DNA from: Macrostomum lignano | Taxonomy: Eukaryota | Direction of reading: 5' to 3' | Assembly (NCBI GenBank): GCA_002269645.1 | Contig: NIVC01002503.1 | Coordinates: forward strand, 62,001 to 126,000 | DNA length: 64,000 nucleotides | In this document: positions 4,182-49,891 of the stretch, piece after piece | Layout: every line of letters begins with the position of its first letter | Position numbering within the stretch: the stretch's first letter is position 1 | Position numbers and translations under genes: made by a program | The notes under the pieces: model-generated | Seen by the model: only the letters and a program-made list of their open reading frames with translations | The model's database searches: none | Told to the model about the DNA's origin: nothing

Positions 4182-8740
<4,559 letters not shown>

Positions 8741-15304: not shown

Positions 15305-15635
15305 CCTCTTGGCCTTGAAATCTCAGTAATTCCCCCCTGTAAGCCTTGAAATCTCAGCAATTCCCCTTGTAAGCCTTGAAATCTCAACAATTCCCCTGTA
15401 AGCCTTGATATCTCAGCAATTCCCCCTGTAAGCCTTGAAATCTCAGCAATTCCCCCTGTAAGCCTTGAAATCTCAGCAATTCCCCCTGTAAGCCTTGAAA
15501 TCTCAGCAATTCCCCCTGTAAGCCTTGAAATCTCAGCAATTCCCCCTGTAAGCCTTGAAATCTCAGCAATTCCCCCTGTAAGCCTTGACATCTCAGCAAT
15601 TCCCCCTGTAAGCCTTGACATCTCAGCAATTCCCC
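15305..15635. repeat. 30-bp minisatellite (GTAAGCCTTGAAATCTCAGCAATTCCCCCT), ~11 copies
   Basis: Direct reading. Confidence 0.95.
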
Positions 15636-16104
15636 TCCAAGCCTACTGTCATTAATCGCGCTTCATTGCATCAGGATTTTGGCCAAGCCAATTATAGTAT
15701 AGTATCATCAATGCCTTATCCTGCACTTTTGTTTGCATTTAAAATTATGATATTAAATACAATAATTGATCTATGATATGTTGCATTAACTTTCGACCAC
15801 CCACCGTTTTTCTTGGCACATGTTTTGATTGATACTGAACACAGGATTGTTTTTATTTACAGTATAAGTATAATGTGAAATTGGTTGAAGATAAGACAGG
15901 ACCTCATTTCACACGGACACAAAACCCTGTGTTTATAAATCTGTTTAAACTATGAATTAATTTCATTAAAGCTTGTGGTATCCGTGTCAGTTTGCCTTAA
16001 CTTTGCAAATTCTGTTACTAATCAGCTGTGTCAAATCTACTCCTAGTTAACATGAATAAGCTTATCAAAAACTTGTTTAGCTGGATTTTCTGCAATGATA
16101 TCGC

Positions 16105-16655
16105 TTCTGTCCTTAATCGCTTCAGGGTGTGAGGCTACTGTCATTAGTTGCTTCAGGGTATGAGGCTTCTGTCCTTAATCGCTTCAGGGTGTGAGGCTTC
16201 TGTCCTTAATCGCTTCAGGGTATGAGGCTACTGTCCTTAGTTGCTTCAGGGTATGAGGCTACTGTCTTTAATCGCTTCAGGGTATGAGGCTACTGTCCTT
16301 GGTTGCTTCAGGGTATGAGGTTACTGTCATAAATCGCTTCAGGGTATGAGGTTACTGTCATAAATCGCTTCAGGGTATGAGGCTACTGTGATAAATCGCT
16401 TCAGGGTATGAGGTTACTGTCATAAATCGCTTCATGGTATGAGGCTACTGTGATAAATCGCTTCAGGGTATGAGGTTACTGTCATAAATCGCTTCATGGT
16501 ATGAGGCTACTGTCCTTAGTTGCTTCAGGGTATAAGGTTACTGTCCTTAGTTGCTTCAGGGTATGAGGCTACTGTCCTTAGTTGCTTCAGGGTATGAGGC
16601 TACTGTCCTTAGTTGCTTCATGGTGTGAGGCTACTGTGCTTATTCGCTTCAGGGT
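16105..16655. repeat. ~31-bp minisatellite (GCTACTGTCCTTAGTTGCTTCAGGGTATGAG), ~17 copies
   Basis: Direct reading. Confidence 0.95.
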
Positions 16656-18087: not shown

Positions 18088-18702
18088 TATATATAAACCC
18101 TTCTCAAGTCTAACAATTCTGCCACTCTCTGTCTGTCATAGCGATCTGCTCTTCTCAACTGTGTTATTGTAAGTTTCAAATATATGACGGTCATTATTAA
18201 AACTTGTTTTATTAATATAACTAAGTTAAGCAATGTCATTAGTGATTCAGTAAAGTACGAGTGAAAGTATGTTCAAATCAATAATTTGTTAGTTCAGACC
18301 AGATTTTTAAAACGGTTTCGGCCAATATTTGAGCAATAGTTCATATACTACTGGCAGTAGCGTCAACTGGCCCTAAAAGGGCTTTTTGAACTCTTGAAAC
18401 TCTTTTGAATTCTTTACAGGCAGTTTAATCACAAATGACATTGTTTAATATATACTCGGCAACATTGAAAAGTCGTCCCAGTGAGCAGTGTGTTTCGACT
18501 AGCGTCTATCACCTGGCCAACCATTTTGATATTCAAAAAAGGTTTAACAAAACAATGAAAAACCGGGCGGAAGCTTCAATCCATCCAATCTTTGCAGTCT
18601 GCGCAGTCTCAAAGGCGGCGACCTTTTTAATGTTGATGAGAATATACTTTATTTTGAAAGTTTACACAACAGTTTTTTATTCTTCATTTCTTTCAATTTC
18701 AG
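18088..18702 (+). promoter_or_regulatory. Probable TATA box, non-coding first exon and 5'-UTR intron (18169-18702) of GST copy 1
   Basis: TATATATAAA at 18088-18097, GTAAGT donor at 18169, and a pyrimidine tract plus TTTCAG acceptor ending at 18702, 35 nt before the ATG. Confidence 0.6.
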
Positions 18703-18737
18703 ACCAAAACAAACTAACGAACACAAGCGATCTAGAA

Positions 18738-19361
18738 ATGTCTGGCAACAAATACGAGTTCATGTACTTTCCCGTGAAGGGCTACGGTAACATGGTTCGC
18801 ATTGTCCTGGAGGATCAGGGCATCCCGTACGAGTACAAGCCGGTAGGGGAGAACTGGCCCCAGGTGAAGCCGACTACACCGTTTGGCCAGGTGCCAGTGC
18901 TCACTGTTAACGGATCGACCCAGATTGCTCAGTCTCACACCATCGCTCGCTACCTTGGCCGCGAGCACGGCCTGATGGGTAGCAACAACATCGAGCAGGC
19001 CCAAATTGAAATGTGGATCGACCAGAGCGCCGATTTGCGCAAAAAATTCGCCAAAATGATCTACACCGACTATGAGAACGGACTCAAGCCGTTCCTTGAA
19101 TCTATCCCGACCGAATTAGCGCCATTTGAGAAGCAGCTGACTGGAGACAGTGCTCACCTGCTGCTTGGCAAGCTGACCCTGGCTGACTACATCGTGTTCG
19201 ATGTGCTTCACGTGCTCACCGCTCTGAGCCCGACCTGTCTGGATAGCTTGCCCCACGTCAAGGCGTTCTACACCAGCTTCGGTGCCAGGAAGAATCTGCG
19301 CGCTTTCCTGGAAAAGCCAGAGATCAAGTCGATGAAGTTCACCGGATCGCCGCATCTTTAA
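18738..19361 (+). CDS. GSTP: Glutathione S-transferase, pi-class-like (copy 1, 207 aa)
   Basis: Catalytic Tyr in YFPVKG, G-site motifs PFGQVP and QSHTIARYL, and C-terminal ADYIVFDVL...PTCLD, all alignable by eye to GSTP1. Start taken at ATG 18738 after the UTR intron. Confidence 0.93.
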   Translation: MSGNKYEFMYFPVKGYGNMVRIVLEDQGIPYEYKPVGENWPQVKPTTPFGQVPVLTVNGSTQIAQSHTIARYLGREHGLMGSNNIEQAQIEMWIDQSADLRKKFAKMIYTDYENGLKPFLESIPTELAPFEKQLTGDSAHLLLGKLTLADYIVFDVLHVLTALSPTCLDSLPHVKAFYTSFGARKNLRAFLEKPEIKSMKFTGSPHL

Positions 19362-20126
19362 ATCGGCTAGGATTATCAATGCTGTTTTTTAAACAGTCTG
19401 CCATTGAACTCGAAACTATACGGCTGATATGAGAGCTTATAACTATTGTAGTTCACTATCGTTAGCATTCTACTATCTTCTATAACCCTAATTATGACTA
19501 TTTTTTAGCTGTATTATTACAACTGTTGTTTGTTTATTTATTATTACTAGAAGATCGTCTAATCAGCTGTTTTTATTTTAGTTCGTATAATTTTGGAATC
19601 AACACTATATATACATATTTTAAGCATGCGGCATCATATCCGGTTTTAGATTCAGTTCATTTGTCTGGTTATTATCACTAATTCTTTAAGTCTTCATTCT
19701 TGTAAGTTTTCACTAGCGTTTTTATTGTTGGATAGAGTTTTCAATGGTTCCACCCTGAGCTATATTGAGGTATAGTCAATGTATAGGAAACAAAAACACA
19801 AATTTGAGAGACCATGATCCAGGCGTCCACCCAAGTTTAGTCTCGATAAACTTATGACGCCAACTTTGATTGTGGTGTCGATTTCTGGTTTTCAATAGTG
19901 CGCACCGACCATCCTATGAAGCCACCTAAAAACTAGACAAAAAGTCATGCCGGATGTCCACAACAATTGGCTGACCATTTCTGTTGACTCCTTTCAACAC
20001 TTCTAAAGCCCCCCCCCCCTTGATCCCCAGCTATGCTTTACTTAGCATACAGACAGATGGAAAACATCTGTAGAAGTTCTTCCAGTATATTTACGAGCTA
20101 TATATATTTGCAAACCCGCAGCCGCA

Positions 20127-20753
20127 ATGTCCAGCAACACCTACGAGCTGACCTATTTCCCAGTGAAAGGCCTGGGCAACATGATCCGTTTGATATTGGA
20201 GGACCAGTCTATCAAGTACAAGTTTAACTTAATCACTAAGGACACCTGGGCTGACTTTAAGCCTACAACGCCATTTGGCCAGCTGCCAGTGCTCACGATC
20301 AATGGCAAGACTAAAATATCTCAGTCTCACACCATCGCTCGCTACCTTGGCCGCGAGCACGGCCTGATGGGTAGCAACAACATCGAGCAGGCCCAAATTG
20401 AAATGTGGATCGATCAGACAATCGACATTCGAACGAAGTTTTTGCGAATGATCTACGAAAATTATGAGGCCGGCAAGCAGCCGTTTATCGACTCAATTCC
20501 AGCCCAGCTGGAGCCGTTTGAGAAGCAGCTGACTGGAGACAGTGCTCACCTGCTGTTCGGCAAGCTGACCGTGGCTGACTACATCGTGTTCGATGTGCTC
20601 CTCGTGCTGGTTGCTCTGAGCCCGACCTGTCTTGACAGCTCGCCCCACGTCAAAGCGTTCTACACCAGCTTCGGTGCCAGGAAGAATCTGCACGCTTTCC
20701 TGGAAAAGCCAGAGATCAAGTCGATGAAGTTCACCGGATCGATGCATGTTTAA
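20127..20753 (+). CDS. GSTP: Glutathione S-transferase, pi-class-like (copy 2, 208 aa; chimera of copy 3 N-half and copy 1 C-half)
   Basis: Same motifs. MIYENYEAGK matches GSTP1 LIYTNYEAGK. Confidence 0.93.
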   Translation: MSSNTYELTYFPVKGLGNMIRLILEDQSIKYKFNLITKDTWADFKPTTPFGQLPVLTINGKTKISQSHTIARYLGREHGLMGSNNIEQAQIEMWIDQTIDIRTKFLRMIYENYEAGKQPFIDSIPAQLEPFEKQLTGDSAHLLFGKLTVADYIVFDVLLVLVALSPTCLDSSPHVKAFYTSFGARKNLHAFLEKPEIKSMKFTGSMHV

Positions 20754-22587
20754 ATTTGCTCGATTGTTCTTGGAAACCAGTGTGGAATTGAAATCGAAAC
20801 TATATGACTGATGTGAGAGCTAACAACCCTTGTAGTTTACTATCGTTAGCATTCCATCTTCTATAACCCTAGCTGTGACATTTTCCTAGTACAAGTACAG
20901 TTGTCTGTTTATCTAAATGCTTTTAGAAGATCTTTTCCGTATACTTTTTGATTAAACATTTTATATATATATGTTAAGCAAACGGCATCACTTCTAGTTT
21001 AAAATTCAATTCAATTTTTCTGGCTAGAATTACTTCGTTTCTTCACCGTTGTGTTGCAGAAAATTTGTTAAAATATTCTATCTGCAGAAAAAACTGCACA
21101 CCATTTCTAGTAATTAAATATAACTCGTTTAGTTCTACTTATTTCTTAGTAGAGTGGTTTACTGTTTATTTCTATGTTTGAAGCAGCTTAGAGAATGAGA
21201 ATGTTTATTACGAGTCAATTCAGTGTTAGGTATAGATAATTTAATAGAAAATCGATCCGATTGTAAAAGCATTAGTCTGTCAATTTAATTGATATTAGTT
21301 TCAGATCTAGCATATTAGAATTACAATGTGTAGCGTGTGTGTTGTACGATAAGCCAAGGGAGATACGTGAAATAGTGACACTATGTAATCATTTTGTGTA
21401 GTTTCCACCAGTGAAGTCTTTTCGTAAAGCAACCTAGAAGTTGGTCTCTGCTAGACTGTTTTTGGAGGTTGTTGTATGCTTTCGATTAGAGACGGTACGG
21501 GGTCTGCTTGTCCGTCAAAATCTTTTTAGGCTAAATGACTCATTTTATTTTCTACAAAGTGTGGGTTTCTTACTATCTAATCAACTCTCTCTGGTCGTGA
21601 GAGATAGTACCTGAATAGGGTGGACGTCTTAAGTTAAACATCTGGACGGGAAACCAAGGAATGACATAGAGTCCATATACAATGTAATTTTTCTCATTTG
21701 GAACACATTTCAATGATGACAAGAAACATGTTTACATAATGTCAGAGGAACACAAATTAGCTGTAGAGAGAAAAGTACAAATCATAATTGTTAATTGCGC
21801 GTCTTATACTTCTGGGCATGTATTGGATTTGATCCCCACTCGCGACTAGTTTAATCTAGCTAGTTTTGCTCCAGGGTAGTATTATTGAGTAGCCGTATCC
21901 CCTGCATGCTCTGGTAGCTCAACTTACCAGGGCTCTGAAAAATCCAGGTCCGCGTTCATTCGCTCAGCTCAATATTAAATACGTTAGACTAACCAGCTGC
22001 TGCAGCTGCAATGGACTATGTCTGCCTTTCCAACTGCTATGCCAATCATAAATTGTGTAGCGAATTGGAATGGCCACTCAAGTCCCAAGTCGTTTCGTTT
22101 CTTCTACGAGTCGTATACAGCTCTGCATGCTGACTGCGCATTAGGCTTATTCAGTGTATCGATCATTACCTCGTCTAAACCCGCCTCAACCACGTGGATA
22201 GACTGCAGTTGTCCGTAAATATATAGCAGCTGGTAGACTCATGGCAGATTCTCTCTCTCACTGTAGCCGCCGATTTCTAAACTTAGCTACTTATTAACTG
22301 CGAGCTATAACTTTTACTCAAACGGTATCCTAATATAAATCTTCATTCATTCTTGTAAGTTTTCACAGGCTTTTTGTCAATGGTTTTATCCTGACAGATA
22401 TTGCGGTATTAGCCTATATAGGAAACAATATCAAAAAATTGTGAGAACATGATCCAGGTAACCATAAGTGTGTAGACGTGAACTTTGACTGTGGTGTCGT
22501 TTTAGTTATAGTGCACCACATTTTAAAAACCGCATTCAATTCCAGCATATAAAGTGAACACAAAATTATTGCAAACCCGCAGCCGCA

Positions 22588-23220
22588 ATGTCCAGCAACA
22601 CCTACGAGCTGACCTATTTCCCAGTGAAAGGCCTGGGCAACATGATCCGTCTGATCTTGGAGGACCAGTCTATTGAGTACAAGTTCAACTTAATCACTAA
22701 GGACACCTGGGCTGAAGTGAAGCCTACAACGCCATTTGGCCAACTGCCAGTGCTCACGATCAATGGCGAAACTAAAATATCTCAGTCTCACACCATCGCT
22801 CGCTACCTTGGCCGCGAGCACGGCCTAATGGGTAGCAACAACATCGAGCAGGCCCAAATTGAAATGTGGATCGATCAGACAATCGACATTCGAATGAAGT
22901 TTTTGCGAATGATCTACGAAAACTATGAGACCGGCAAGCAGCCGTTTCTAGAGTCTGTTCCAGCCCTACTGGAACCGTTTGAGAAGCAGCTGGCGAGTCA
23001 GGAGGACAAGACTCACCTGTTGCTTGGCAAGATTACCCTTGTTGATTACATTTTCTTCGACCTGCTGCTAGCTCTGGTGGCTCTGAGCCCCAACTGCACC
23101 GACAGTCTGCCCTCTGTCAAGGCGTTCTACGAAGCTTTTGGCGGTCGCGAGAAAATCGCCGCCTTCCTCAACCGTGACGACATTAAGGAGGCCAAGTTCA
23201 CTGGGACAGATCATCTTTGA
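22588..23220 (+). CDS. GSTP: Glutathione S-transferase, pi-class-like (copy 3, 210 aa)
   Basis: Same motifs. AATAAA at ~23283. Confidence 0.93.
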   Translation: MSSNTYELTYFPVKGLGNMIRLILEDQSIEYKFNLITKDTWAEVKPTTPFGQLPVLTINGETKISQSHTIARYLGREHGLMGSNNIEQAQIEMWIDQTIDIRMKFLRMIYENYETGKQPFLESVPALLEPFEKQLASQEDKTHLLLGKITLVDYIFFDLLLALVALSPNCTDSLPSVKAFYEAFGGREKIAAFLNRDDIKEAKFTGTDHL

Positions 23221-24298: not shown

Positions 24299-24311
24299 GT
24301 TTTGTTAATGA

Positions 24312-24935
24312 TATTCTAGTCATAGAGCTGCTGGTCATTTCTGTAAGGAGATTCTAGTCATAGAGCTGCTGGTCATTTCTGTAAGTAGGTTCTAGTCATA
24401 GAGCTGCTGGTCATTTCTGTAAGGATATTCTAGTCATAGAGCTGCTGGTCATTTCTGTAAGTAGGTTCTAGTCATAGAGCTGCTGGTCATTTCTGTAAGG
24501 AGATTCTAGTCATAGAGCTGCTGGTCATTTCTGTAAGTAGATTTTAGTCATAGAGCTGCTGGTCATTTCTGTAAGTAGGTTCTAGTCATAGAGCTGTCGG
24601 TCATTCTGTAAGGAGGTTCTAGTCATAGAGCTGCAGGTCATTTCTGTAAGGATATTCTAGTCATAGAGCTGCAGGTCATTTCTGTAAGGAGATTCTAGTC
24701 ATAGAGCAGCAGGTCATTTCTGTAAGGAGATTTTAGTCATAGAGCTGCAGGTCATTTCTGTAAGTAGGTTCTAGTCATAGAGCTGTCGGTCATTGTGTAA
24801 GGAGGTTCTAGTCATAGAGCAGCAGGTCATTTCTGTAAAGAGGTTCTAGTCATAGAGCTGTCGGTCATTCTGTGAGGAGATTCTAGTCATAGAGCTGTCG
24901 GTCATTCTGTGAGGAGCTTCTAGTCAAAGCTGCTG
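24312..24935. repeat. 38-bp minisatellite (TCTAGTCATAGAGCTGCTGGTCATTTCTGTAAGGAGAT), ~16 copies
   Basis: Direct reading. Confidence 0.95.
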
Positions 24936-25246
24936 GTAATTTTTATTTCAATTTCTACTTATCAGATTGATTCGGAATTCAGAGGTATTTGCAATTTTTA
25001 TTTTCGAGATGCGCGCTCAAAATTTTTGAACTTTTTCGTTATGGCTGGTCTCCATGCGAACAATTTGTATTTGTTTATACTGTAGAAAATTTACTTTTGT
25101 TTAGATTATCAGGTTTAAATTTGCCACACTAAAACACTTAGATAACACTATGACACTTTGTTGCTTGTGCAAAGCTGTGTGGTGGACTTTGGAAGACGTT
25201 TGATCAACTAAAGCGACTCGCGGCTTTTCAATCGAAGTTGGTTAGC

Positions 25247-25370: not shown

Positions 25371-26006
25371 ATGTCGCAGAAATACGAATTGACCTACTTG
25401 CCAGCCAAGGGTAAAGCCAATCTAATCCGCCTGATGCTGGCCGATCAGGGCATTCCATACAAGTACACCGAGTACGACAGAGCCAATTGGCCGGCTGCCA
25501 AGCCCAACTATCCGTTCAAACAGCTGCCAGTGCTCACAGTCGATGGTTCAATCCAGATTGCCCAGTCGCATTCCATTGCTCGCTACCTTGCTCGCGAGCA
25601 CGGCCTAATGGGTTCTAATAGCATCGAGCAGGCCCAGGTAGACATGTGGCTAGACCAGACCTTGGACTTGCGCAATCGTCTGTTAAACGTGGTGCACATT
25701 GACTTTGAAAAATTGCTACAACCGTTTCTGAACTCGCTGCCCGATATGTTGGAAATCTTTGAAACTCGTCTGGCTGCTCAGCCGGCTTCGGCCAAGCACC
25801 TGGCGCTGGGTAAACTGACCATTGCCGACTATGCACTGTTTGATGTGCTCTACTACCTGCAACTGCTCAGGCCGGAGTCTCTTGACAACACTCCGGTATT
25901 GAAGGCATTCTACACGGAGTTCGCCGCCAGACCCAAGTTGCGGGCCTACATGGAGACTGACGAATTCAAATGTCTGAGAGCGACTGGGTCGCCGCATCTG
26001 CAGTAG
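25371..26006 (+). CDS. GSTP: Glutathione S-transferase, pi-class-like (copy 4, most divergent, 211 aa)
   Basis: YLPAKG, RLMLADQG (GSTP1 RMLLADQG), PFKQLP, QSHSIARYL, ADYALFDVL and ARPKLRAY (GSTP1 ARPKLKAF). AATAAA at ~26087. Confidence 0.92.
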   Translation: MSQKYELTYLPAKGKANLIRLMLADQGIPYKYTEYDRANWPAAKPNYPFKQLPVLTVDGSIQIAQSHSIARYLAREHGLMGSNSIEQAQVDMWLDQTLDLRNRLLNVVHIDFEKLLQPFLNSLPDMLEIFETRLAAQPASAKHLALGKLTIADYALFDVLYYLQLLRPESLDNTPVLKAFYTEFAARPKLRAYMETDEFKCLRATGSPHLQ

Positions 26007-26806: not shown

Positions 26807-28303
26807 ATGGATTCTAAAGAGCCATCAACTTCGGCAAAGTCTAATGCTACTACAGCATCCAGTTTGTTGCCAAGTCACGCGGAGTTAGTCCGAGCTTATC
26901 GTATGGACGAATTGTGGATTAGTAGGATAGCTGAGCACCTGGACAGATTAGCGCTGGCAGTTCTGGGATTGGAGCGCTACACCGCCTGCAGGTCGGGACT
27001 GTCTGCTTTCGGTCAAGTTGCCTCGAAAGCTTTGTACTACGGGGCGTCCACTGCGCAGTGCTTGCAGACTCTTGGCGAAGAGTACGTCAATCTTGTGCAG
27101 GTGCGGACTGGACAAGTTTCTAGATAAGGTTTCAAACGCCATGGTTAAGGAACTAGGAATGTTGCTAAGCGGTTGTTATGGTTTCTATACGGTTGCTTAT
27201 TGTTGCTATGCCGTTGCTTATGGTTTCTATTCAGTTGCTTATGGTTTCTATTCAGTTGCTTATGGTTGCTATGCGGTTGCTATGTGGTTGCTATACCGTT
27301 GCTATATAGTTACTATGCTGTTTGTTGCTTGTGCATGCTATGCGGTTGCTACGTGGTTGCTTTTGGTTGATATAGATGCAATTGCTGTGCAGTTGCTATG
27401 TGGTTGCATATGCTAGCTTACGGTTGCTATGCGGTTGCTATGTAATTGCTTATGGTTGCTAATGATTGCTATGTGGTTGCTTATAGTTGCTTGTTCTTGC
27501 TTATGCTTTCTTTTAATTGCTTATGGTTGCTACGTGGTTGCTATACCGCTGCTTTATAGTTGCTAGGCTTCACCAATCTCGTCTATCTCCGCCAGGTCGA
27601 CCGCAGTCGCCGCCGTCTCCCCGGTAGTCGAGCTCGCCTATTCCTAATCCTACTGCAGTGCCTGTTCCCCGACCTGTTGCTGTGGCTGCTCAGACGGGCT
27701 GAGCACAGGTGTCGCTCCGATCTGACGCTGTCAGAACCTATTCAAAGACGTCGACTGGCATTGCTAAGCCGTTTAAGCGCCCTAGCAACCAGCGCGTACG
27801 AGTTGAACAGCGCTTTATTCTACATCAACGGTTCCTATTATCAATTAAGCAAGCGAGTTCTGGGTATTAATTATCTGCGCAGTCGTCCCGGCCTGGGTCA
27901 CGTGACCGAGACTCTGTATCGCCTGATTGGCTGGCTGAGTTTGGCGCGCTTAGCTGGGCGCGCAGTTAATCAAATGCGCTCCCTAGCCTCGGCATTGGCT
28001 GCCGCAGGCGCGGCCGCTCCAACTGCAGAGCCGTCGGATAATCCAACAGATTCGATGTCTTTGCAGGAGAAGCAGACTTTCGAAGCCGAAGCCAATAATA
28101 ACAATGGCCGATTAAATCGAATCTGTCCATTGTGCTGCGATCGAGTTCTTGAGGCCAGCGCAATCGCCCTCTGCGGTCACGTGTTCTGTTGGGCTTGCAT
28201 TGTGCGCTGTCTGCAACTCACCGGCAGGTGCCCGCTTTGCAGATTAGAGTGCCAACCGAATCGAGTTGTGCACCTGGCTAACTATTCCGATGCACCTATG
28301 TAG
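26807..28303 (+). CDS. PEX10: Peroxisome biogenesis factor 10, RING E3 ligase. Exons 26807-27100 and 27596-28303
   Basis: The Pex2/10/12 N-terminal motif QTLGEEYVNLVQ|VDRSR spans a phase-0 GT-AG intron. C-terminal C3HC4 RING: CPLC...CGHVFCWACI...CPLCR. Confidence 0.93.
27170..27560. repeat. Degenerate low-complexity repeat (TATGGTTGC-like units) in the PEX10 intron
   Basis: Direct reading. Confidence 0.8.
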
Positions 28304-28883
28304 GATTTAAATTCAGATTTTTCACTTGGCTTTTTCAAAAGCTCGAAATTTCTGATACTGGACCATTTTTACAAGCTTAAGTGCAACGGGTGTGAGAAAA
28401 TTCTAGTTTCATACTACTTACTAAGTAGCTTAGCATAAAAACTCCGCCCAGTTTTAATAAAGTCATTCTTTATTTATTGTAACTCAATATTAAAATGATT
28501 TTAATTTCATCTTTTGTAAATAAAATCGGTGCCGTATTAGTGATTTTACAGGCCAATTACAAACCTTAGTAATTAACTTTGCTGTATTCGTTTTTATTTT
28601 ACAGTGTAGACAATCTTTTCAATGTTTTAAGTGTCAAGCTAGGTTTTATTGGAATTTCCCTCGCGGGAATCCCCGCCTTGGACTGTACGTTCTAAAAATA
28701 GCTACCTTATTAGATAATAAACGAATGAACATTAACTAGCCACGCGCGGGGACGAAAGGACGAAAAGTGCAAGTACAGAACACCCTTTTCCTCTCTTACT
28801 CATGCTGCGTCTACGAGCCAAAAAGTCTCATTAACAAATTCCTAGTAGTCACGAGTTTGCGGTCGCGCGACGAAGAAGGAAGC

Positions 28884-31800
28884 ATGTCTGAGCGTTCAGC
28901 CCTGCTGACGGGTCAGCCAGACAATGGCGAGGACGGACCAGAATGGGCCTATCAGGACGACAGGCCCAACGCTATGAGTCAGTCTATTAATAACGACAGC
29001 CTAGAAGCGTCCGACCCGCATGGATTGGACAATTCTAGAAATTCGTACGTTGCTTTCTTATCAAATAAAAATCGATTATTTTATTGTCTAAACATAGCTA
29101 AGCAGGGTTTAGATCTGCAATGTCAAATTTTCATTTGATATAAAAATATGAAATCCCAACCCAAACCCTTTTACCCTAGCCCACGACCCTATTTACCCTA
29201 GCCCAGACCCTATTTACCCTAGCCCAGACCCTATTTACCCTAGCCCAGACCCTATTTACCCTAGCCCAGACCCTATTTACCCTAACCCAGACCCTATTTA
29301 CCCTAGCCCAGACCCTATTTACCCTAGCCCAGACCCTATTTACCCTAGCCCAGACCCTATTTACCCTAGCCCAGACCCTATTTACCCTAGCCCAGACCCT
29401 ATTTACCCTTCCCAGACCCTATTTACCCTTGCCCAGACCCTATTACCCTAATCCAGACCCTTTTACCCTAACCCAGACCCTATTTACCCTAACTCAGATC
29501 TACCTTGTATATGATAATATTTATATGATTATATTTCAGCAACATGTCGAGCCTAATGAACGTTCTGAAAGGCAACCTGGGCACTGGAATACTTGCCATG
29601 CCCGTGGCTGTTAAAAATCTTGGCTTTTTAGTAAGTTCTACTATAGGTTTATATTATATTTAGGGAATATTATGATTCATCCGTTTAATAATGATTTATT
29701 ATCAAATTTGCAGCTCGGGCCATTGACAATACTCGCCATAGGTTGCATTGCCACCCACAGCATGCATTTGTTGGTGCGGTCTGCTCAGTACTTGCGTCGA
29801 ATGTAAGCCTCTTCTTCTTAGTGCGCTTTCTTCGACTTGTCTGGTAACCAATTTTTATTTGTTATCGTTTTTAGCAAACGCGTGTCCTACTTAGACTACT
29901 CGCAAGTAATGTACGAAGCAACTTTGCAACGATTTCCTGGCCGGGATAAACTAGCAAATGTTCTTAAGTGAGTTTTTTAATGATCGTTTTGACTTATTTC
30001 TAAGAAAATTCTGTAGAATTGTTCAGTAATAATTAATTGCCAAGTTGTTTATTTTAGACTGGTCACTGCACTGTCATCGTTAAGACTTTTAAGCATGGTT
30101 AAGACTTTTATTAGGACAAATTGGGTATCAGTTTACTTTTCCGTTTTTTTATTTTGGCTTGTTACCCAGTTACGAGTTGATAGTTACGAGTGGTTACTTG
30201 AGACTATCTCACTATCATATTAATAATATTTCAGAATTTCATCACCACAAATATGTTTATCGTTAGGAGATACAAATATTTGTTTGCTGAATTTTTCATA
30301 GCGCATAGGGTGGAATCCAAGACAAGTACTGAGGTAGACTTTCAGACAGGTGCTGAGGCAGACTCGAAGACAGGTACTGAGGCAGACTCCAAGACAGGTA
30401 CTAAGACAGAACTCCAAGACATGTAAGACAGGTACTTACTGAGGTAGACTCCAAGACAGGTACTAAGACAGACTACAAGACAGGTACTGAGATCGACTCC
30501 AAGACAGGTACTGAGGCAGACTCCAAGACAGGTACTGAGGCAGACTCCAAGACAGGTACTGAGGCAGACTCCAAGACAGGTACTGAGGAAGACTCCAAGA
30601 CAGGTACTGAGGCAGACTCCAAGACAGGTACTGAGGTAGACTCCAAGACAGGTACTGAAGTAGAGTCCAGGAAAACTACTAAGGCAATTGTGTAATGGTT
30701 CATTGGTAGCATTTTAAGTTTGCTGTAATTTTGCTATTTGTCTAGCAGCTTAACCCACGAAGGACTTTGAGCCGGGCTACCCCTAACCGTGCCATATATA
30801 TGCTCATATGGTGTTATTAACTACATGCGTTTTCAATTATTGTTCTAACGCCACTAAACTCGGGCGCATTCAGGTCATTCGTGAACGTTTCATTATTGAT
30901 AACGCAAATTGGATTCTGCTGCGTGTACATCCTGTTCGTGTCGGATAATTTGCACCAGCTAGTCGACTGCAACCTGCAGCCGGGCTCCTCTAATTGGGAT
31001 GTAAATATCTATAAGGTTCTGGTGATGGTCTGCCTTCTGCCCTACGTGTTCGTTCGGAATCTTAGACTGCTGAGCTACTTCTCAATGCTGGCTAATGTGA
31101 TGACCGCTATTGGATTGGTCCTCGTATTTACCTACTGCTTGCAGGTCAGAATTGTGGCTGTGTTTTTTGCCTCCGTGTTTATCTACTTGTTTCAGTTTTT
31201 GTTTGTTGCTTTCCTCTCTATGATTCAGATTTTTCGTTTCTAATTTCGCGATTGTCTTTATATTTTTATTACTAATCTATTAATATCTACTCACGTTAGA
31301 CATTAATACTCTTATTAAGCAGCTCGTATTCTAACATTTAATTTTATAAGCTAAGCTAAATATGATTTCACGTTTGATTTGCATTTCTAATGTCATTATT
31401 TAATCGCATGTCTACTTGATGGCAAGTTTGTCTGTTTAATATTGGGTCGAACAATAAATATGCTACTACTAGTAATAGGTTACTTAACTCAGTAGTTTTG
31501 TTTGATACAATACAATAGGATACTTTTTTGTATGGCTTCCTACTTTTGTTATTACTTTATCTACTAACGCAAGCTCCGCTACTTTTTCTACAACTAAATT
31601 TTATGGCCCCGGGCATGGACTGGGGGGGGGGTTAATTCAGCTGCTGCGTCCTTAATGTACATTACCGGTCACGCTAGCCTATGTACACTAGTGGTTAGAT
31701 TGTGAATTCTCTGCCCCTATTTTATTGCCCATCGTGTCACGTTCCCCGGGCCTGCAATGTACATTATCCTCCGCTCAAACATATGTACATTAGTCGGACA

Positions 31801-33400
31801 ATTTAAAATCTCTACCCCACCCGTGCTGTATTGCCCATCCTCACGCCCTTGTTACTTTTTTTAGCTACGTACAGTGTGTCATTATTATCAACCACGCTAC
31901 AGCTAATCGCATATTCGCATCTTTCGAAGTGTTTGATGCGTTAGTAGCTTAATTAAATTAATTGATCTTATTATTTATACAGGATCTGCCAGACTACAGA
32001 GAATACGCGTTAATAAAGCCGGTCAATCTGTGGCCAATAGCATTCGGTTTAATTATATTCGCATTCGAAGGCATTTCGCTAGTATTGCCAATCGAGTCCC
32101 GTATGCACAGGCCGGAGGAGTTTGGCGGCTTTACCGGCGTACTACAGCTGGGCATGACCATTGTGACGTGCTCCTACACTGCTGTTGGATTCTACGGCTA
32201 TTTGAAATTCAACGAAAGCGTGCAAGGCTCCATCACCTATACGATTAATGACAAGTTGTGGGTCTACCAGCTCATCAGGCCGCTGTTTGCCGCTTCGCTG
32301 TACATCTCCTACGGGCTGCAGTTCTACGTGCCGGCTGTTATCATTGTCGGCTGGGCCAACGCTCGAATTTTCGGCCCATGGCGTCGGCAAGTTGCCGAAG
32401 CCGCCATCAGGATCGGCCTGGTGCTGTTCACCTTCGCGGCCGCCGTTGTTGTGCCTCACCTGGATTTAATGATTGCTCTCATTGGCGCATTCAGCAGCTC
32501 TTGTCTGGCTTTGATCTTTCCGCCTATCATTGATTACATGGTGTTTAGCGGCCCCATTGTAGGTGAGTGATTCTGAGACGCCAGATCTAAATGTACTTTT
32601 AAAAGTACTTTATTATACATTTGATTGATTAATATCCATTACCGATTGTTAATTACTCTGTAATGAGATTTTATGGCTAGACTCTCGCGCCACACGACAT
32701 CCTGGTTCGATTCCATGCTCAAACACTTCCATTTGTGGCTTGTTGCATGCGCAACTCCCCCTCTGATTTACACCGGCCTTGCAACTTACTTTGTTATCAA
32801 AAATGCAACTTAGCTACCAATAAAAAAACTAAGCCAAACCTAACGAAGTTTTGGGTAAACGGCAGGAGTAACTAGACTGTAGTTCTAAAAGCTAAATGCC
32901 TCGTCATCTAATTAGTAAATAGTGCATATTTGTTTTGTTTTATCGGGCGGACATTTTTGCGACTTAACCTTGGCTGGCCCCTTCGCCAGCCGGCCGAACC
33001 GGCCGGGTGTTCCGAATGTATGTTGAATGTGCTCACGAATCAGCAGAATGTGCAGAATAACCTTAGCGCTGTGTGGTTGTGGGATCATGTCGCTGAAGGC
33101 CCCACAGCCCTCTTGCGAATATTGCACGCCAAACCCCCATTGTTTACAGAATCCGACGATTACAACGTAACAGACGAACCAGGCTCAGCTTCGGCCTCAT
33201 CGTCTAGCCGGAATTCCGCCTGCTCTCACGCTAAGAACCTGTTCATCGTGTCCTTCGGCCTGATGGGCTTTGTTATTGGCACCCTGACTACCTTGATCAG
33301 CATTGTTGATACCTTTCAACAGTCGTCGAATTCCACCGCTCCGTTTGTCTGCTCGCCGCCTGCACACCTGGCGGGCGCGACCGACTTCGGCGATCTCTAG
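28884..33400 (+). CDS. SLC36A: Proton-coupled amino-acid transporter (SLC36/PAT family). Exons 28884-29044, 29540-29630, 29714-29802, 29875-29967, 30874-31144, 31983-32562, 33150-33400
   Basis: All six introns are GT-AG and phase-compatible. Family motifs: LKGNLGTGILAMP, TQIGFCCVYILF, FGLIIFAFEGISLVLPIE, GFYGYLKF, GLQFYVP, VPHLDLMIALIGAFSSSCLALIFPP. Confidence 0.93.
29160..29495. repeat. 21-bp minisatellite (CCCTATTTACCCTAGCCCAGA), telomere-like, in SLC36 intron 1
   Basis: Direct reading. Some units contain CCCTAA. Confidence 0.93.
30320..30665. repeat. 24-bp minisatellite (CCAAGACAGGTACTGAGGCAGACT) in SLC36 intron 4
   Basis: Direct reading. Confidence 0.93.
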
Positions 33401-35139: not shown

Positions 35140-36197
35140 ACTGACCTAGGTTCCAAAGTGAACCAGGTGCTTAAGGTTCGGGTTCTAAGGTAGACCAGGT
35201 GCTTAAGGTTCGGGTTCTAAGGTAGACCAGTTGCTTAAGGTTCGGGTTCTAAGGTAGACCAGGTGCTTAAGGTTCGGTTTCTAAGGTAGACCAGGTGCTT
35301 AAGGTTCGGGTTCTAAGGTAGACCAGGTGCTTAAGGTTTGGGTTCTAAGATAGACCAGGTGCTTAAGGTTTGGGTTCTAAGGTAGACCAGGTGCTTAAGG
35401 TTTGGGTTCTAAGGTAGACCAGGTGCTTAAGGTTTGGGTTCTAAGGTAGACCAGGTGCTTAAGGTTTGGGTTATAAGGTAGACCAGGTGCTTAAGGTTTG
35501 GGTTCTAAGGTAGACCAGGTGCTTAAGGTTTGGGTTCTAAGGTAGACCAGGTGCTTAAGGTTTGGGTTCTAAGGTAGACCAGGTGCTTAAGGTTTGGGTT
35601 CTAAGGTAGACAAGGTGTTTAAGGTTTGGGTTCTAAGGTAGACCAGGTGCTTAAGGTTTGGGTTCTAAGGTAGACCAGGTGCTTAAGGTTTGGGTTCTAA
35701 GGTAGACCAGGTGCTTAAGGTTTGGGTTCTAAGGTAGACCAGGTGCTTAAGGTTTGGGTTCTAAGGTAGACCAGGTGTTTAAGGTTAGGGTTCTAAGGTA
35801 GACCAGGTGCTTAAGGTTTGGGTTCTAAGGTAGACCAGGTGCTTAAGGTTTGGGTTCTAAGGTAGACCAGGTGCTTAAGGTTTGGGTTCTAAGGTAGACC
35901 AGGTGTTTAAGGTTTGGGTTATAAGGTAGACCAGGTGCTTAAGGTTTGGGTTCTAAGGTAGACCAGGTGCTTAAGGTTTGGGTTCTAAGGTAGACCAGGT
36001 GCTTAAGGTTTGGGTTCTAAGGTAGACCAGGTGCTTAAGGTTTGGGTTCTAAGGTAGACCAGGTTTTTAAGGTTTGGGTTCTAAGGTAGACCAGGTGCTT
36101 AAGGTTTGGGTTCTAAGGTAGACCAGGTGTTTAAGGTTTGGGTTCTAAGGTAGACCAGGTGTTTAAGGTTTGGGTTCTAAGGTAGACCAGGTGTTTG
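35140..36197. repeat. 32-bp minisatellite (CCAGGTGCTTAAGGTTTGGGTTCTAAGGTAGA), ~32 copies
   Basis: Direct reading. Confidence 0.97.
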
Positions 36198-36580
36198 AGG
36201 TCCTCAGCATGGAAAATGGTTTGCAAGGTAAATCCAGAAGCTCACATCCGGTGTGCAGTAAAATATACTTGTTCAGAATGATGTACATGTAAATCAGATG
36301 AGTGTGCAAGGTTCGGCAGAAAATGCTATATTAATAGATTGCTAAAGGGAGGCTCATCTACTGCATGCATGCACCTGCATGACGCACATTTTATCGATAC
36401 TGTGCACTGAAAGTTTACTTGTACCTTGTCCGCGCTCTGGCTCTGTACAAGTTAGCACAGGTAAATAAATATATTAGCCAAATTCTTATCTGGCATGAGA
36501 TTTAAAATGAACTGATTAAGGGTCAAGTCCATTTAAATGGTTGGGCATTCAAAGGTGACGACATACTGTATTTGATAGTC

Positions 36581-41931: not shown

Positions 41932-44900
41932 TCAATCACAGCTCCCGAGTTTCGAGTAGGTCAGCTTCTCAGGTGGCCGTCGCCGGCGTGCAGGCTGCAG
42001 TCCGCAGGGCGCGTCTGGCGGCTCCGGCTCCGGGTGCTCCGCGCCGGTCCCGGTCGAGTCCGCAGCTTCAGCTGGCTCGGTCCCGGCTGCCGGACCGTCA
42101 GGTTGGTCGCTCTCGACTCGCCGGCCCCGCAGTTGGTCGGCATGACGGCGCCAGGTCAGGCCGTCGCTCGTTTCGACTCGGAAGCTCAGCGGCCCAGTCT
42201 GCTCGAGAACTTTTGCTGGTTGCCAGGCCGCCGCATTAGGCCGGTAGTCCCTGGCCCAGGCCTCCGACCACGGCTCCTCCGGCAGCTCCCGCGACCGCCG
42301 GTCGTGCTGTCGTTTCTGGGCAGATTGCTCCCGCAGTACTCGATCCCGGGCTGACGGCCGCAGCAGGTCCATTCGAGTCCGGAGCTGCCGCTTCAGGAAG
42401 AGCTCCGCTGGTGTCCGACCGGTCGTTGGGTGCGGGCTAGCTCGGTAGCCCAGCAGCCAGTTGCACAGGCGGATGTCGAGGTCCGGCTGACTGCTCCGTG
42501 ACGCCTCCATGGCCATCTTGAACGACTTCACCAGCCGTTCCACCAGTCCGTTGGTCTTGGCGTGATATGGACTGCTTCTTGTGTGGCGAATTCCATTTGC
42601 TTTGCAGAAATCGCTAAATCCTTGACTGATGAATGCTGGACCGTTGTCCGATACCAGTTCTCTCGGCAGGCCCCATTGTGCAAACAACACTCGCAGCTTG
42701 CGAACCAGCTCGGCCGATTCGAGTGTTGACACGGCCTCCACATGCGGCCACTTTGAGTGCGCGTCGACTACGAGGAGAAACTGGCGGCCTCGAACCGGCC
42801 CGGCAAAGTCAACGTGGATGCGGTCCCAGGGCTGGTCTGGCCACACCCAGGGGTGCAGTGGAGCCAGCACCGGATGCAGCTTAACGGATTGGCAGGCTTG
42901 GCAGCTGCTGGCAACCGACTCGATGTCAGCATCCATTCCTGGCCACCAGACGAAGGTTCTGGCGACACTTTTCATCCGGGCCATGCCGAAATGTTCCACG
43001 TGTAACTCGCGCAGAACTCCAGGTCGCAACGCTCCCGGAACCAGCACGCGAGTTCCCCAGATCACGCAGCCGTCTTCCACGCTTAGTTCTAGTCGACGAC
43101 GAAAGTAGGGCTCGAGCCCGGGGAACCGACTCTGGCCAGCCAGTCATTATCATCCGGAGAACATCTCGGAGCTCGTCGTCTCGCTTCGTTGCTGCCGCTA
43201 CATCCGCCGCCGTCAATGGAAACTCGCCCGTCAGCTGACAGACCCGATCGTCGTCGTCTGGGCTGTCGTCCTTCATCTGCAGGGGCAAGCGAGACAGGCC
43301 GTCTGCATTGCTGTGCTGAGCAGTCTTGCGGAACCGGATGCTGTAGCTGTACCCTGACAGCAGCAGTGCCCATCTCTGAAGTCGCCCTGCTGCAGTCGGC
43401 GAGATGCCAACCTTCGGTCCGAAAATCGTCGTCAACGGCTGATGATCCGTAATTATCGTGAAGCTCCGGCCGAACAGGTACTGGTGGAACCGCTTGATGG
43501 CGAACACGATGGCGAGGGCTTCTTTCTCAATTTGCGAGTAATTTCGCTCCGCTGCTGACAGCGTCCTTGAAGCAAAAGTCACCGGCCGTTCCGAGCCGTC
43601 CTCCATCGTGTGGGACAGCACCGCGCCGATGCCGACCGATGAAGCATCCGCGGCCACCACCACTGGAAGCTGCTCGTTGAAATGCGTCAGCACGCTGTCC
43701 GAACTCAGTTCTTGCTTAAGATGGTCCCAGGCTCGGTCCTCCGTCTCAGCCCACCGCCAGTCCGTCTCCTTCCTCAAAAGTTTATACAGAGGAGCAGCGA
43801 TCGTGGAGAAGTCCTTGACATGTCGAGCATAGTAGTTTGCGAGGCCCAAGAATGATCGCAGCTCTGATACTGTCGCTGGCCTCGGGCTGTTGACTATTGC
43901 TTCCACCTTCTGAGGCAGCTTCTTGACTCCGTCCTTGCTCAGCAACGAGCCCAGGTATTCGACTTCTTCTTGCAGAAATTTGCACTTGATTCGTTTCAGC
44001 CGCAGGCCCGCCGCTCTCAGCCTGGTCAGTACCTCGCGAAGCGCTGCTAGGTGCTCACTCATTGACGGACCGGACACCAGGATGTCATCAATGCGGCAAC
44101 AGACTCCCGGCACGCCCTTCAAAAGTGTTTCCATCAGCCTCTGGCAAATCGCAGGAGCCGAACTGACGCCAAATGGCAACCGGAGGTACTCGAAAAGCCC
44201 TTTATGCGTGTTGATGGTCGTCAGCTTGCAGCTCTCTTCGTCGAGTGGAAACTGAAGATAACATTGTGACAGATCGAGTTTTGAGAACAGCTGACCCCGT
44301 CCCATCTGCTCGTAAAGCTCTTCAGGCGTAGGCAGCGGGTACTGGTCGATGTGAAGCTGAGGGTTCAACGTCAGTTTATAGTCGCCGCACAGTCGGACTG
44401 AGCCGTCCGCCTTGAGTACCGGAACCACTGGCGTAGCCCACTCGCTGTAGGTCACCGGGCGGATGATGCCTTTGTTGAGCATGTCCTGGAGCTCGAGCTC
44501 AAGCTTGTCCCGCACTGCGAATGGCACGGGTCTGACCTTGCAGAATCGAGGCTGTGCGTCACTTTTAAGTCTCAGTGCGACTGTCTGATCCTTCAACTGC
44601 CCCAGGCTCTCGTCGAAAACATCAGCGAACTCCTCCAGCATCTGGTCGAGAGGCCCGCTGTTCTGCGCCGGCGCCTGGCTGATCTGGTTGGCAAACAACT
44701 GAGTCCAGTTGAGTCGCACCTTTTCCAGCCAATTGCGTCCTAGCAATGGGCAGGCTCCGGTCTGACTGGTGACCACCAGCGGCAGCTTATCATGCTGTCT
44801 TCCGTCGTAGTTGACCCTGACCTCGGCTGTTCCCTTGACTTGTATTGGCTCGCCCGTCCAGGTCCGGAGTCGCAGGCGTGTTGGTGTCAGTGGAGGTCGT

Positions 44901-45808
44901 CCGAGCTGCTTCCACACCGACTCCGGTACGAGGCTGACGCAGGCACCGGTGTCCAGCTGCATGGTGAGGGGCTGGTCATTCACCAGCAGGCTTACGCTGA
45001 TCTTCTTGGCCGATGCAGTGACTTGCGAAATCCAGCCAGTTGCTGCTTCCTCCTCCTCTTCCGTTTGCATTGCGTGCGCTGGTCCGTTCTCTGGCCGTCC
45101 GGCTTTCGTTGTGCTGTAGGCTTTCTTGGCTGAGCGGCAAACTTTCTGCAGGTGTCCAACTTTCCCGCAGTTGTGGCACTTTGCGGTCCTGAAGTGGCAG
45201 GCTGCCGACAGGTGGCCTTTCAATCCGCACCTGTAGCACGCCTTCGAGTCTGGCGCTACCTGCTGGACTGAGCTGACCTCTGAGCTCGATTTCCACTGCT
45301 CAGTTTCCGACTTAGCAATCTCCGCCGCGAGGGCAATTTTCTTGGCCGCATCCAGCGTGAGCTTCTCCTCCATCAGGAGTCGCTGCTGGGTCCGCTGGTC
45401 CCGAAGACCACAAACGAAACAGTCTCGGAGAGCTTCTTCTCGAAACCCGCCGAACTCGCACGAATCGGCCAGATTCCGCAGCGCAGCCAGAAATTGAGCA
45501 GCCGTCTCTCCGTCCTTTTGTGCTCGCTTGTAGAACTTGAACCGTTCAGCGATTACTGGCTTCTTCGGTTTGAAGTACTTTTGAAGGTGCTCGGTGAGGG
45601 CGCTGTATTGCAGATCTGTTGGCTTGGTCGGACTGCAGAGATCCCGCAGGACTGCGTAGCATCGTTCGCCAATCAATGTCAGAAACACTGCCTTCTTCTT
45701 GTCGTCGCCTTCTATGCCGTTTGCAAGCATGTAAGAGTCCATTCGCTCTTGATAGGCGTCCCAATCTTTGCCTTCCTCGTAAGGCTCTAGTTGTCCAACT
45801 GAAGCCAT
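41932..45808 (-). CDS. Gag-pol polyprotein, split by one frameshift near 43120
   Basis: Two CCHC knuckles (CYRCGLKGHLSAAC, CHNCGKVGHLQKVC), protease LDTGA, RT LPFGVSSAP and RIDD, RNase H ADAS/NYSQIEKEAL/TDHQPL, integrase HHCC and DDE (VDFAGP, SDNGP, VER). ATG at 45808 abuts the PBS. Confidence 0.92.
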
Positions 45809-45809
45809 T

Positions 45810-45819
45810 CTCGTCGCCA
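45810..45819 (-). promoter_or_regulatory. Primer-binding site, complementary to the tRNA-Ser(GCU) 3' end
   Basis: TGGCGACGAG 2 nt inside the 5' LTR, complementary to ...CUCGUCGCCA. This PBS is typical of Mag-lineage elements. Confidence 0.85.
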
Positions 45820-46006
45820 ATTGTAATGAAGTCAACTCGCTTATTCTGGAGTAAACTCAGTTGAGGCAAAACCCTCCACGCTCTGTATATTTTATAGGCC
45901 AAGGGGCACGGTGGCCCGCGCATGTACATTACCGTACGTACTGCTAGCTAGGCTTACTAAACAAGCTCCACCCCTACCACGCGGCCCCACCCCATAAGTC
46001 ATGACA

Positions 46007-47527: not shown

Positions 47528-47774
47528 GCTTTGCATGCACTTGAGCCAGGCAGCAACACATGCCCGTCAGTGCAGATGAATACTGGGGGGGGGGGGTAAA
47601 TGCTATACAATGGCGCGCCGAGTGCATGTACTCATAGTTGAGCAAGGATGAAGTGTGTAGCCGCCATCGATGAGCCCAAAATACGAGCGTAGCCTTGCTC
47701 TCGTCCTCGAGCTCGACCTCGTTTATCACTGCCTTTCCCCACCTGTGTCCCAGCGGCATCCAACATTCCCGATC
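47528..47774 (+). repeat. ~245-bp interspersed element, left copy, followed by a (TATC)n tail
   Basis: Reverse complement of 58689-58932 apart from a few substitutions and short indels. Confidence 0.92.
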
Positions 47775-47775
47775 C

Positions 47776-49655
<1,880 letters not shown>

Positions 49656-49891
49656 CGCTATCTACTATCTATAGCCAGGACCTGCACCGGAGCGGTTACG
49701 AAAATTAGATTTCTCGGTAGTTGCACGTACTCTTTTGCACTACTTGAGTAGTCTGATTTTCGTTCGGCATAGCTGGTTCCAGCAGGTAGTTCCTCTGGAT
49801 AAAAGCGCTTACCGCGCCCATTGGCTTTCCAGCTGCCTTAATCGTTTCCGGTGATCTTGTGTGCGTGCTTTCAGCTTGATTGGCTGCGGCA

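Follow-up and report, generated by a model that had tools for sequence, protein, structure and literature searches.

The locus described here raises the question of whether the second gene of a glutathione S-transferase (GST) array in the flatworm Macrostomum lignano is a hybrid of its two neighbors and, if so, by what kind of exchange it arose. The stretch analyzed (hereafter, the window) comprises 64,000 nucleotides, within which positions 8705-29361 are identical to a 20.6-kb locus of contig NIVC01002503.1 (assembly Mlig_3_7). It carries four intact, uninterrupted GST reading frames in a same-strand (+) tandem array, termed c1 to c4 from 5' to 3'. Our analysis confirmed that c2 is a genuine hybrid of c3 and c1; a single unequal crossover between misaligned c3 and c1 very probably produced it. 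The four genes are as follows:

18738-19361, + strand: c1, Pi-class GST of 207 amino acids (aa), intact open reading frame (ORF) with Pfam GST_N and GST_C_3; upstream parent type "A" and donor of the 3' part of c2.
20127-20753, + strand: c2, chimeric Pi-class GST of 208 aa; residues 1-129 c3-type, residues ~135-208 c1-type.
22588-23220, + strand: c3, Pi-class GST of 210 aa; downstream parent type "B" and donor of the 5' part of c2.
25371-26006, + strand: c4, more distant fourth paralog of 211 aa; outgroup, outside the exchange.

No further GST fragments or pseudogenes were found within the 64-kb window besides this four-gene array. Outside a middle tract described below, c4 shares 50-62% nucleotide identity with c1 and c3. 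A 308-aa ORF at 18435-19361 was rejected as an upstream read-through of c1, the true start of which is the ATG at 18738, aligned in the four paralogs and in other species.

The mosaic structure of c2 is apparent from nucleotide identities on a codon alignment of the GST copies. Over alignment columns 1-192, c2 is 94.3% identical to c3 and 65.1% to c1, and over columns 292-390 the corresponding values are 88.9% and 56.6%, whereas over columns 391-636 the relationship is reversed (65.0% to c3 versus 92.7% to c1, the latter reaching 97.4% in a second locus introduced below). The three copies barely differ, if at all, over nucleotides 194-287, which are hence uninformative for the chimera. Informative sites (n = 177) divide at column 386/387, with 94 of the 100 on the left being c3-like and 71 of the 77 on the right being c1-like. 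The resulting maximum chi-square value (131.5) was reached by 0 of 2000 permutations, as was that for the second locus (143.9; 0 of 2000). Consistently, neighbor-joining (NJ) trees with split-based bootstrap counting, to which we added coding sequences from other Macrostomum transcriptomes (L003, L004, and L008; c1-like and c3-like, ~1-kb transcripts only), placed the two parts of c2 with different partners. More specifically, the N-part tree united c2 with c3 (100%) and both with the foreign c3-like sequence (98%), and the C-part tree united c2 with c1 (100%) and both with the c1-like genes of other species (100%). By bootstrapped NJ, c1 grouped with c1-like transcripts in both halves (type "A" throughout), and the N and C parts of c3 grouped with the c3-like transcript of another species (98-99%; type "B" in both tested halves), its middle tract going with the c1 type. 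Thus, c1 and c3 represent old paralog types that predate these species, and c2 is the recombinant. The first-pass annotation had proposed such a switch of partner, and the windowed identities and separate half-gene trees bear it out, with 100% bootstrap on each side of the joint and the halves not grouping with the same paralog.

We narrowed the switch to the following interval and its homologs:

20513-20531, + strand: crossover interval in c2 (G CCG TTT GAG AAG CAG CTG; codons 129-135, E-PFEKQL), from the maximum chi-square breakpoint and a comparison of the identity island in nine genes.
19121-19139: homologous interval in c1.
22974-22992: homologous interval in c3.

This joint is bounded by the final c3-type site (column 386) and the first unambiguous c1-type site after it (column 406). 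It is the single breakpoint of c2, lies in frame and without an insertion or deletion at homologous positions, and falls within TTTGAGAAGCAGCTG, which is common to both parent types. One peptide specific to c2 is PFIDSIPAQLEPFEK. The c1-like 3' half extends from about codon 135 through ~300 bp of 3' flank. The earlier description of a c3-like 5' flank and N part also stands, except that the c3-like part reaches residue 129 rather than ending at ~120.

The sequences surrounding c2 follow the same division as its coding halves. Its 3' flank resembles that of c1 and its 5' region that of c3, and each of the two copies of a duplicated unit runs from the 3' part of one gene to the 5' part of the next:

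19121-20512, + strand: duplicated unit, copy 1 (1392 bp); c1 3' part, c1-type 3' flank, c3-type 5' region, c2 5' part.
20513-22973, + strand: duplicated unit, copy 2 (2461 bp); c2 3' part, 3' flank, spacer with 1.3 kb extra, 5' region, c3 5' part.
19121-19679 to 20513-21034: collinear block 1, c1-type 3' coding sequence and 3' flank (78%).
19693-19884 to 22346-22503: collinear block 2, c3-type upstream block (67%).
20080-20512 to 22540-22973: collinear block 3, c3-type acceptor region and 5' coding sequence (92%).
19362-19679, + strand: c1 3' flank, homologous to the c2 3' flank at 20754-21034 (80% over ~280-320 bp; Jukes-Cantor [JC] distance, 0.235).
19693-20126, + strand: c2 5' region, homologous to the c3 5' region at 22346-22587 (81%; JC distance, 0.224).
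19885-20079, + strand: c2-only segment (195 bp), present only in the c1-c2 spacer, within the c2 5' region.
21035-22345, no strand assigned: extra spacer segment (1.3 kb), present only in the c2-c3 spacer and 98% identical in the second locus.

The whole 765-bp c1-c2 spacer therefore passes from c1-type 3' flank straight into c3-type 5' region, and it is collinear with the c2-c3 spacer. The c1 and c2 3' flanks have no resemblance to the c3 3' flank, and no similarity was found between the c2 and c1 5' regions. The 5' regions of c2 and c3 share a TTCATTCTTG/GTAAGT donor-like block (19693 and 22346) and a CAG acceptor 5 nucleotides (nt) before the ATG, and a TTCATTCTTG/GTAAGTTTTCAC block lies upstream of both genes. 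Strings that the first-pass annotation had quoted from these flanks were recovered, with the 22-mer TTGCAAACCCGCAGCCGCAATG, which ends in ATG, matching exactly at 20108 and 22569, and the TTCATTCTTGTAAGTTTTCAC block lying at 19693 and 22346. A search for c3-type remnants downstream of c2 and for c1-type remnants upstream of c2 detected none. The 1.3-kb segment could be either an insertion in the c2-c3 spacer or a deletion from the c1-c2 spacer. We considered it as a transposon but obtained no support for this candidate, finding no terminal (inverted) repeats, target-site duplication, convincing ORF, or second copy in the window; the 195-bp segment at 19885-20079 likewise displays no transposon features.

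This arrangement is what an unequal crossover leaves on its duplication product. The hybrid is located between both intact parents in the same orientation (c1-c2-c3, an order also found at the two other loci, L001 and L012), and the downstream gene supplied its 5' part and the upstream gene its 3' part, which is the polarity that such a crossover forces. A c1-type 3' flank abutting a c3-type 5' region is, moreover, exactly what one misaligned exchange between c3 and c1 gives. Divergence along the unit is similar wherever it was determined, i.e., synonymous divergence (dS) of 0.17-0.21 between the N parts of c2 and c3 and of 0.156 between the C parts of c2 and c1 in the window, and JC distances of 0.235 (3' flanks) and 0.224 (5' regions), so that window values lie at 0.16-0.24 throughout; by comparison, c1 versus c3 is saturated. 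The duplicated unit would thus be of roughly even age, at ~0.2 substitutions per site. Gene order, polarity, flanks, the single in-frame joint, and even divergence together make one unequal crossover the best mechanism, and the earlier proposal of such an event is well supported by these features. We infer that the exchange was a crossover rather than a conversion.

The sequence of events that we propose begins with an ancestral Macrostomum array of Pi-class GST genes in the order c1-c3-c4. Chromatids would have misaligned so that c3 on one paired with c1 on the other, and a non-allelic homologous crossover would have taken place inside the 19-nt identity island, which codes for the conserved PFEKQL motif where helix alpha5 ends. 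The resulting duplication would retain c1 and c3 and gain, between them, a new in-frame hybrid made up of the c3 5' region and codons 1-129, then of c1 from codon ~135 onward together with the 3' flank of c1. We place this event after the split from the other sampled Macrostomum species and before separation of the three M. lignano locus copies. Purifying selection has maintained the hybrid since then, in an array that also swaps shorter patches by gene conversion.

Evidence for such conversion comes from the middle of the genes:

Middle 94-nt tract (columns 194-287), + strand, c1-type in all three genes: c1 18928-19021; c2 20320-20413; c3 22781-22874.

This tract encodes residues ~65-96 (from the end of beta4 through alpha3 and the linker into the beginning of alpha4) and is shared without mismatch by c1 and c2, with c3 departing from c1 at a single site, in genes of which the coding identity on either side is 58-66%. 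Its dS is 0.05-0.17, versus saturation elsewhere. In the same region, c4 differs at 19 of 99 positions, including 11 synonymous ones, and c3 is 91% identical to a c1-like gene of another species (c1-like genes, ~90%) versus 70% to a c3-like gene of another species; amino acid conservation alone therefore does not explain the identity of the tract. In the corresponding tree, c1, c2, c3, and the c1-like genes of other species were joined at 91%. A c1-type tract was hence copied into the c3-type gene by interlocus gene conversion and, most simply, this conversion would predate the crossover because c2 and c3 both carry the tract. It follows that c3 is itself a mosaic and not a pure parent. Separately, c2 of the window contains four adjacent private changes at ~20609-20612 (columns 492-495; CACC>GGTT, VLTALS to VLVALS), three of the four matching the c3 state. 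The other two loci lack this patch, which we consider a candidate micro-conversion from c3.

The same four-gene array is present on two further contigs of the assembly, NIVC01000225.1 (L001, the second locus referred to above) and NIVC01000797.1 (L012), each encoding an intact 208-aa c2 with the same joint as in the window. Where aligned, L001 is collinear with the window at ~96-98% identity, and the three contigs differ by 2-4% from one another. The c2 gene of each locus has private substitutions, and c2-specific substitutions common to all three are found at columns 361, 363, 366, and 381. M. lignano has been reported to be neopolyploid with three subgenomes (PMC10733133), and Mlig_3_7 is a PacBio/Canu assembly with acknowledged redundancy of a highly repetitive genome (PMC5730564); three copies of the array fit both reports. 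The chimera is also contained in two UniProt entries that are run-on fusions, A0A1I8HV54 (P0024; 620 aa, c1+c2+c3) and A0A1I8J9W7 (P0025; 411 aa, c1+c2). The NCBI model PAA76745.1 (P0026; 211 aa, L012 3595-6704) runs from the 5' part of c2 into the 3' part of c3 over a 2.47-kb "intron" and is most likely a spliced-alignment artifact between paralogs, the switch lying inside the identical tract.

To place the joint within the protein, we considered class and fold. All four products score above the curated Pfam cutoffs for GST_N, GST_N_3, and GST_C_3, with GST_N extending to about residue 79 and GST_C_3 starting from about residue 100. The best sequence matches in the PDB are all GSTP1 (mouse, human, and pig; E = 4e-40), versus 1e-27 for Sigma and 1e-26 or weaker for Mu. 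The AlphaFold model of c2 (predicted local distance difference test score, 94.3; predicted TM-score, 0.91) displays the order beta-alpha-beta-alpha-beta-beta-alpha, linker, alpha4-alpha9, and superimposes on GSTP1 with TM-scores of 0.91-0.93 and a root-mean-square deviation of 1.3 Å; its top 43 fold matches are all Pi class (TM-scores, 0.85-0.93). Sequence and fold both give the Pi class, and a Sigma-class assignment was ruled out. The array thus encodes proteins assignable to the cytosolic Pi-class GSTs, for which glutathione conjugation is predicted. Active sites were compared by homology mapping onto GSTP1 by alignment, using the canonical residues of the glutathione site (G-site) and the hydrophobic substrate site (H-site). 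The defining set of GSTP1, Y7, W38, K44, Q51, P53, Q64, S65, and D98 (the catalytic Tyr plus glutathione-binding residues), corresponds to Y10 (catalytic Tyr), W41, K45, Q52, P54 (cis-Pro), Q66-S67, and D100, all of which c1, c2, and c3 retain at each of the three loci.

In the c2 model, the linker spans residues 78-84, alpha4 residues 85-110, and alpha5 residues 113-134. The joint (129-135) consequently lies at the C-terminal end of alpha5, past the linker and ~50 residues inside the C domain. The c3-derived part of c2 includes the whole N domain, the linker, alpha4, and alpha5, and the c1-derived part includes the alpha5-alpha6 loop with its indel, alpha6-alpha9, and the tail. The term "domain swap" used in the first-pass annotation does not describe this gene, since its joint is not in the inter-domain linker. 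Nor did the proposed new combination of G-site and H-site survive homology mapping. Among canonical G-site residues, only the one at position 53 varies across c1, c2, and c3 (V, L, and L, respectively), and the parents disagree at three canonical H-site positions, 16 (Y/L), 38 (E/K), and 106 (A/L; c1/c3 in each case). Positions 16, 38, 53, and 106 all fall in the c3-derived part of c2, and no copy differs at tail positions 203 and 204; we accordingly predict an essentially c3-like active site for c2, and a dimer interface that is probably c3-like too. The c1-type tail beyond residue 204 (SMHV in c2, SPHL in c1, and TDHL in c3) could touch the H-site, and any new specificity of c2 would come from this tail or from indirect effects. 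The PFEKQL motif at the joint corresponds to Pro128/Phe129 of GSTP1, which belong to the inter-subunit "lock"; conservation of these residues would explain the identity island in which the exchange is placed.

The c2 ORF is intact in all three loci, which differ from one another at 9-11 synonymous versus 2-5 nonsynonymous sites. The resulting ratio of nonsynonymous to synonymous divergence (dN/dS) is 0.06-0.12 (P ~1e-5 to 1e-4 against neutrality), demonstrating that c2 is under purifying selection and, together with the intact ORFs, arguing that it is a working gene; enzymatic activity is predicted. The gene is annotated on this contig with a 209-aa product, the model starting one codon upstream of the 208-aa ORF. 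An exact-protein look-up of the 208-aa sequence returned no record, and no c2-like proteins or transcripts of >80% identity were found outside M. lignano. The annotated products of c1, c2, and c3 begin at the first in-frame codon after an AG (18700-18702, 20119-20121, and 22580-22582, respectively), and these AG sites may represent trans-splice acceptors. CAG acceptors a few bases before the ATG were observed for all three genes (c1, 18700-18704; c2, 20119-20123; c3, 22580-22584), which fits spliced-leader trans-splicing and possibly a polycistronic unit.

Several points weigh against our interpretation of c2 as the selected product of one crossover. In the second locus (L001 6144-6767 and 7543-8169), the 3' parts of c1 and c2 have a dS of only 0.036 versus 0.156 in the window, implying that this region was re-homogenized at least once and weakening the age comparisons; the difference reflects either homogenization of the L001 pair subsequent to separation of the loci or faster divergence of the window copies. 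The exchange falls in a 19-nt island although an identical tract of 94 nt lies ~100 nt upstream, so the joint is not at the site most expected for non-allelic homologous recombination. The spacers differ by the 1.3-kb and 195-bp segments. Duplication of c3 followed by a long conversion from c1 covering all detectable 3' homology would yield the same sequence, and only parsimony and the even-age argument separate the two models. All three contigs derive from one assembly of one inbred line, and expression of c2 is deduced from its presence in a transcriptome-based annotation. The low dS in L001, the c1-type stretch of 94 nt carried by c2 and c3, and the c3-like 4-nt patch seen only in c2 of the window indicate that conversion is clearly active in the array, and they favor the two-step alternative, i.e., a tandem duplication of c3 (c1-c3'-c3) and then conversion from c1 over the 3' part of c3', in a tract of at least ~520 bp from codon ~130 through ~300 bp of 3' flank. 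We nevertheless regard this alternative as unlikely, for it needs two events where one is enough and predicts c3-type sequence beyond the tract, none of which was detectable between the c2 and c3 downstream regions. The c1-type 3' flank adjoining c3-type 5' sequence in the c1-c2 spacer, the evenness of divergence (~0.2) across both halves and both flanks, and the polarity are likewise those of a crossover.

That the middle gene does not exist, c1 and c3 reads having been mis-joined, was the refutation that the first-pass annotation had itself put forward. The repetitive and redundant genome (PMC5730564) lends itself to such an error, and wrong gene models do occur here (one joining c2 to c3, others fusing c1+c2+c3). 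Yet array and junction are shared by three contigs 2-4% apart with private c2 substitutions in each, c2 has its own fixed substitutions in all three, its flanks are ~20% diverged from the parental ones, leaving no room for a recent mis-join, and the fused UniProt models carry the same chimera; the chance of an artifact is accordingly negligible. A further alternative accepts the gene and regards it as a decaying or redundant by-product of the duplication, without a function of its own. The c2 protein or transcript is found from genome annotations only, and its predicted active site duplicates that of c3, as this alternative would have it. It is nonetheless very unlikely given the selective constraint on an ORF intact in three loci, the retention of all catalytic and G-site residues, and the annotation of c2 from transcript-based evidence (RNA sequencing with trans-splice and poly(A) evidence; PMC5730564), with a product starting just after an AG acceptor like those of c1 and c3. 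As to why the hybrid was retained in all three loci, we suggest only tentatively that the c3-type catalytic half (N domain, alpha4-alpha5, and the dimer "lock") combined with c1-type alpha6-alpha9 and tail might confer a property absent from both parents, an explanation that we consider possible but doubtful. Candidate properties would be substrate range via the C-terminal tail, stability, or the ability to heterodimerize.

Comparison with known systems places the locus among familiar phenomena. The hemoglobin anti-Lepore gene has the same topology as c2. In the CYP11B1/CYP11B2 chimera of glucocorticoid-remediable aldosteronism (PMC8750845), a hybrid likewise lies between intact tandem parents in the same orientation, with its 5'/promoter side from the downstream gene, its 3' part and flank from the upstream gene, and a single in-frame joint. 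By contrast with these two, c2 is old (~0.2 substitutions per site), is present in all three loci, is under purifying selection, and is no rare disease allele; furthermore, its parents were already ~35% diverged, with the exchange confined to a 19-nt identity island. The short, nearly identical tracts within diverged paralogs, synonymous sites included, are akin to interlocus conversion in the L/M opsins (PMC3213168); this likeness holds for the 94-nt tract, which is absent from the other-species ortholog, and for the small patches, but not for the main c2 junction. Growth of GST clusters is commonly attributed to unequal crossing-over (PMC3242777). A literature search found no paper on this locus (including Mlig015681 and Mlig006042) or on a natural flatworm GST hybrid of this kind, and a junction-specific degenerate DNA pattern had 0 matches among metagenome contigs.

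At the protein level, vertebrate and nematode Pi-class GSTs (PDB 2oa7, 1glq, 4gss, 1tu7, and 5d73) share 36-38% identity with c2 in structure alignments, at TM-scores of 0.89-0.93, and the secondary-structure order, the catalytic Tyr, and the Trp/Lys/Gln/cis-Pro/Gln-Ser/Asp set are the same as in GSTP1. The equivalent of GSTP1 Arg13 differs, being Tyr in c1, Leu in c2 and c3, and Lys in c4, and the M. lignano genes differ from GSTP1 in having a gene body without introns and in forming a four-member tandem array in three assembly copies. Engineered chimeras, such as DNA-shuffled Mu or Theta GSTs, illustrate that exchange of paralogous segments gives folded enzymes; another, PDB 1lbk (hGSTP1 with a replaced C-terminal segment), is among both the sequence and the fold matches of c2. 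Those are laboratory constructs with measured activities, whereas c2 is natural, is known here from sequence, and has a joint that was not designed. The mechanism is thus that of a standard unequal-crossover hybrid together with ordinary interlocus conversion, and the protein is a standard Pi-class GST; the locus reveals neither a new mechanism nor a new kind of enzyme.

The remainder of the window provides the setting of the array. Directly downstream lie a Pex2/Pex12-type RING peroxin gene (26807-28303) and then an Aa_trans amino acid transporter gene (~28815-33400), in the same order at all three loci. A Ty3/gypsy-type retrotransposon pol was observed at 41932-45835 (- strand) inside a GC-rich block, with a 969-aa ORF containing aspartyl protease, reverse transcriptase, and RNase H and with integrase in an overlapping 382-aa ORF. 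The window is very rich in tandem repeats and microsatellites, for example ~2.5 kb of (ATCT)n and arrays of 20-48-bp units, the latter flanking and separating the GST genes and varying in length between loci:

1-816, 7472-8515, 15312-16655, 24306-24942, 35162-36201, 47772-50268, 52519-53401, 58124-58691, and others: tandem repeats.

Long "ORFs" at 47670-49751 and 52406-53419 were dismissed as tandem repeats.

The existence of the hybrid has practical consequences, as M. lignano is a model for toxicology and stress (PMC5043416, PMC11641670) in which "gstp1" is in use as a stress marker (PMC5043416). The published "gstp1" quantitative PCR amplicon (PMC5043416, Table 2; 89 bp) corresponds to c1 19278-19366. 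Its forward primer is exact on c1 and also on c2 (20670-20689); the reverse one differs from c1 at a single position and finds no site on c2 even when three mismatches are allowed. A reagent directed against the 3' part of c1 is at risk of cross-reacting with the chimera, and primers, RNA interference probes, and read mapping in that part cannot separate c1 from c2. Similarity among c1, c2, and c3 has already led to wrong gene models, i.e., the c2-to-c3 jump and the run-on fusions. For the family, the locus offers a clean and datable natural case of gene birth by unequal crossover among detoxification genes, in which the two parents, the two spacers, and the joint can all still be read, three independent copies of the locus can be compared, and the evidence for selective retention is clear. 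Were the hybrid indeed retained for a property that neither parent has, c2 would represent a natural, selected demonstration that the modules of Pi-class GSTs meet between alpha5 and alpha6 and not in the domain linker.

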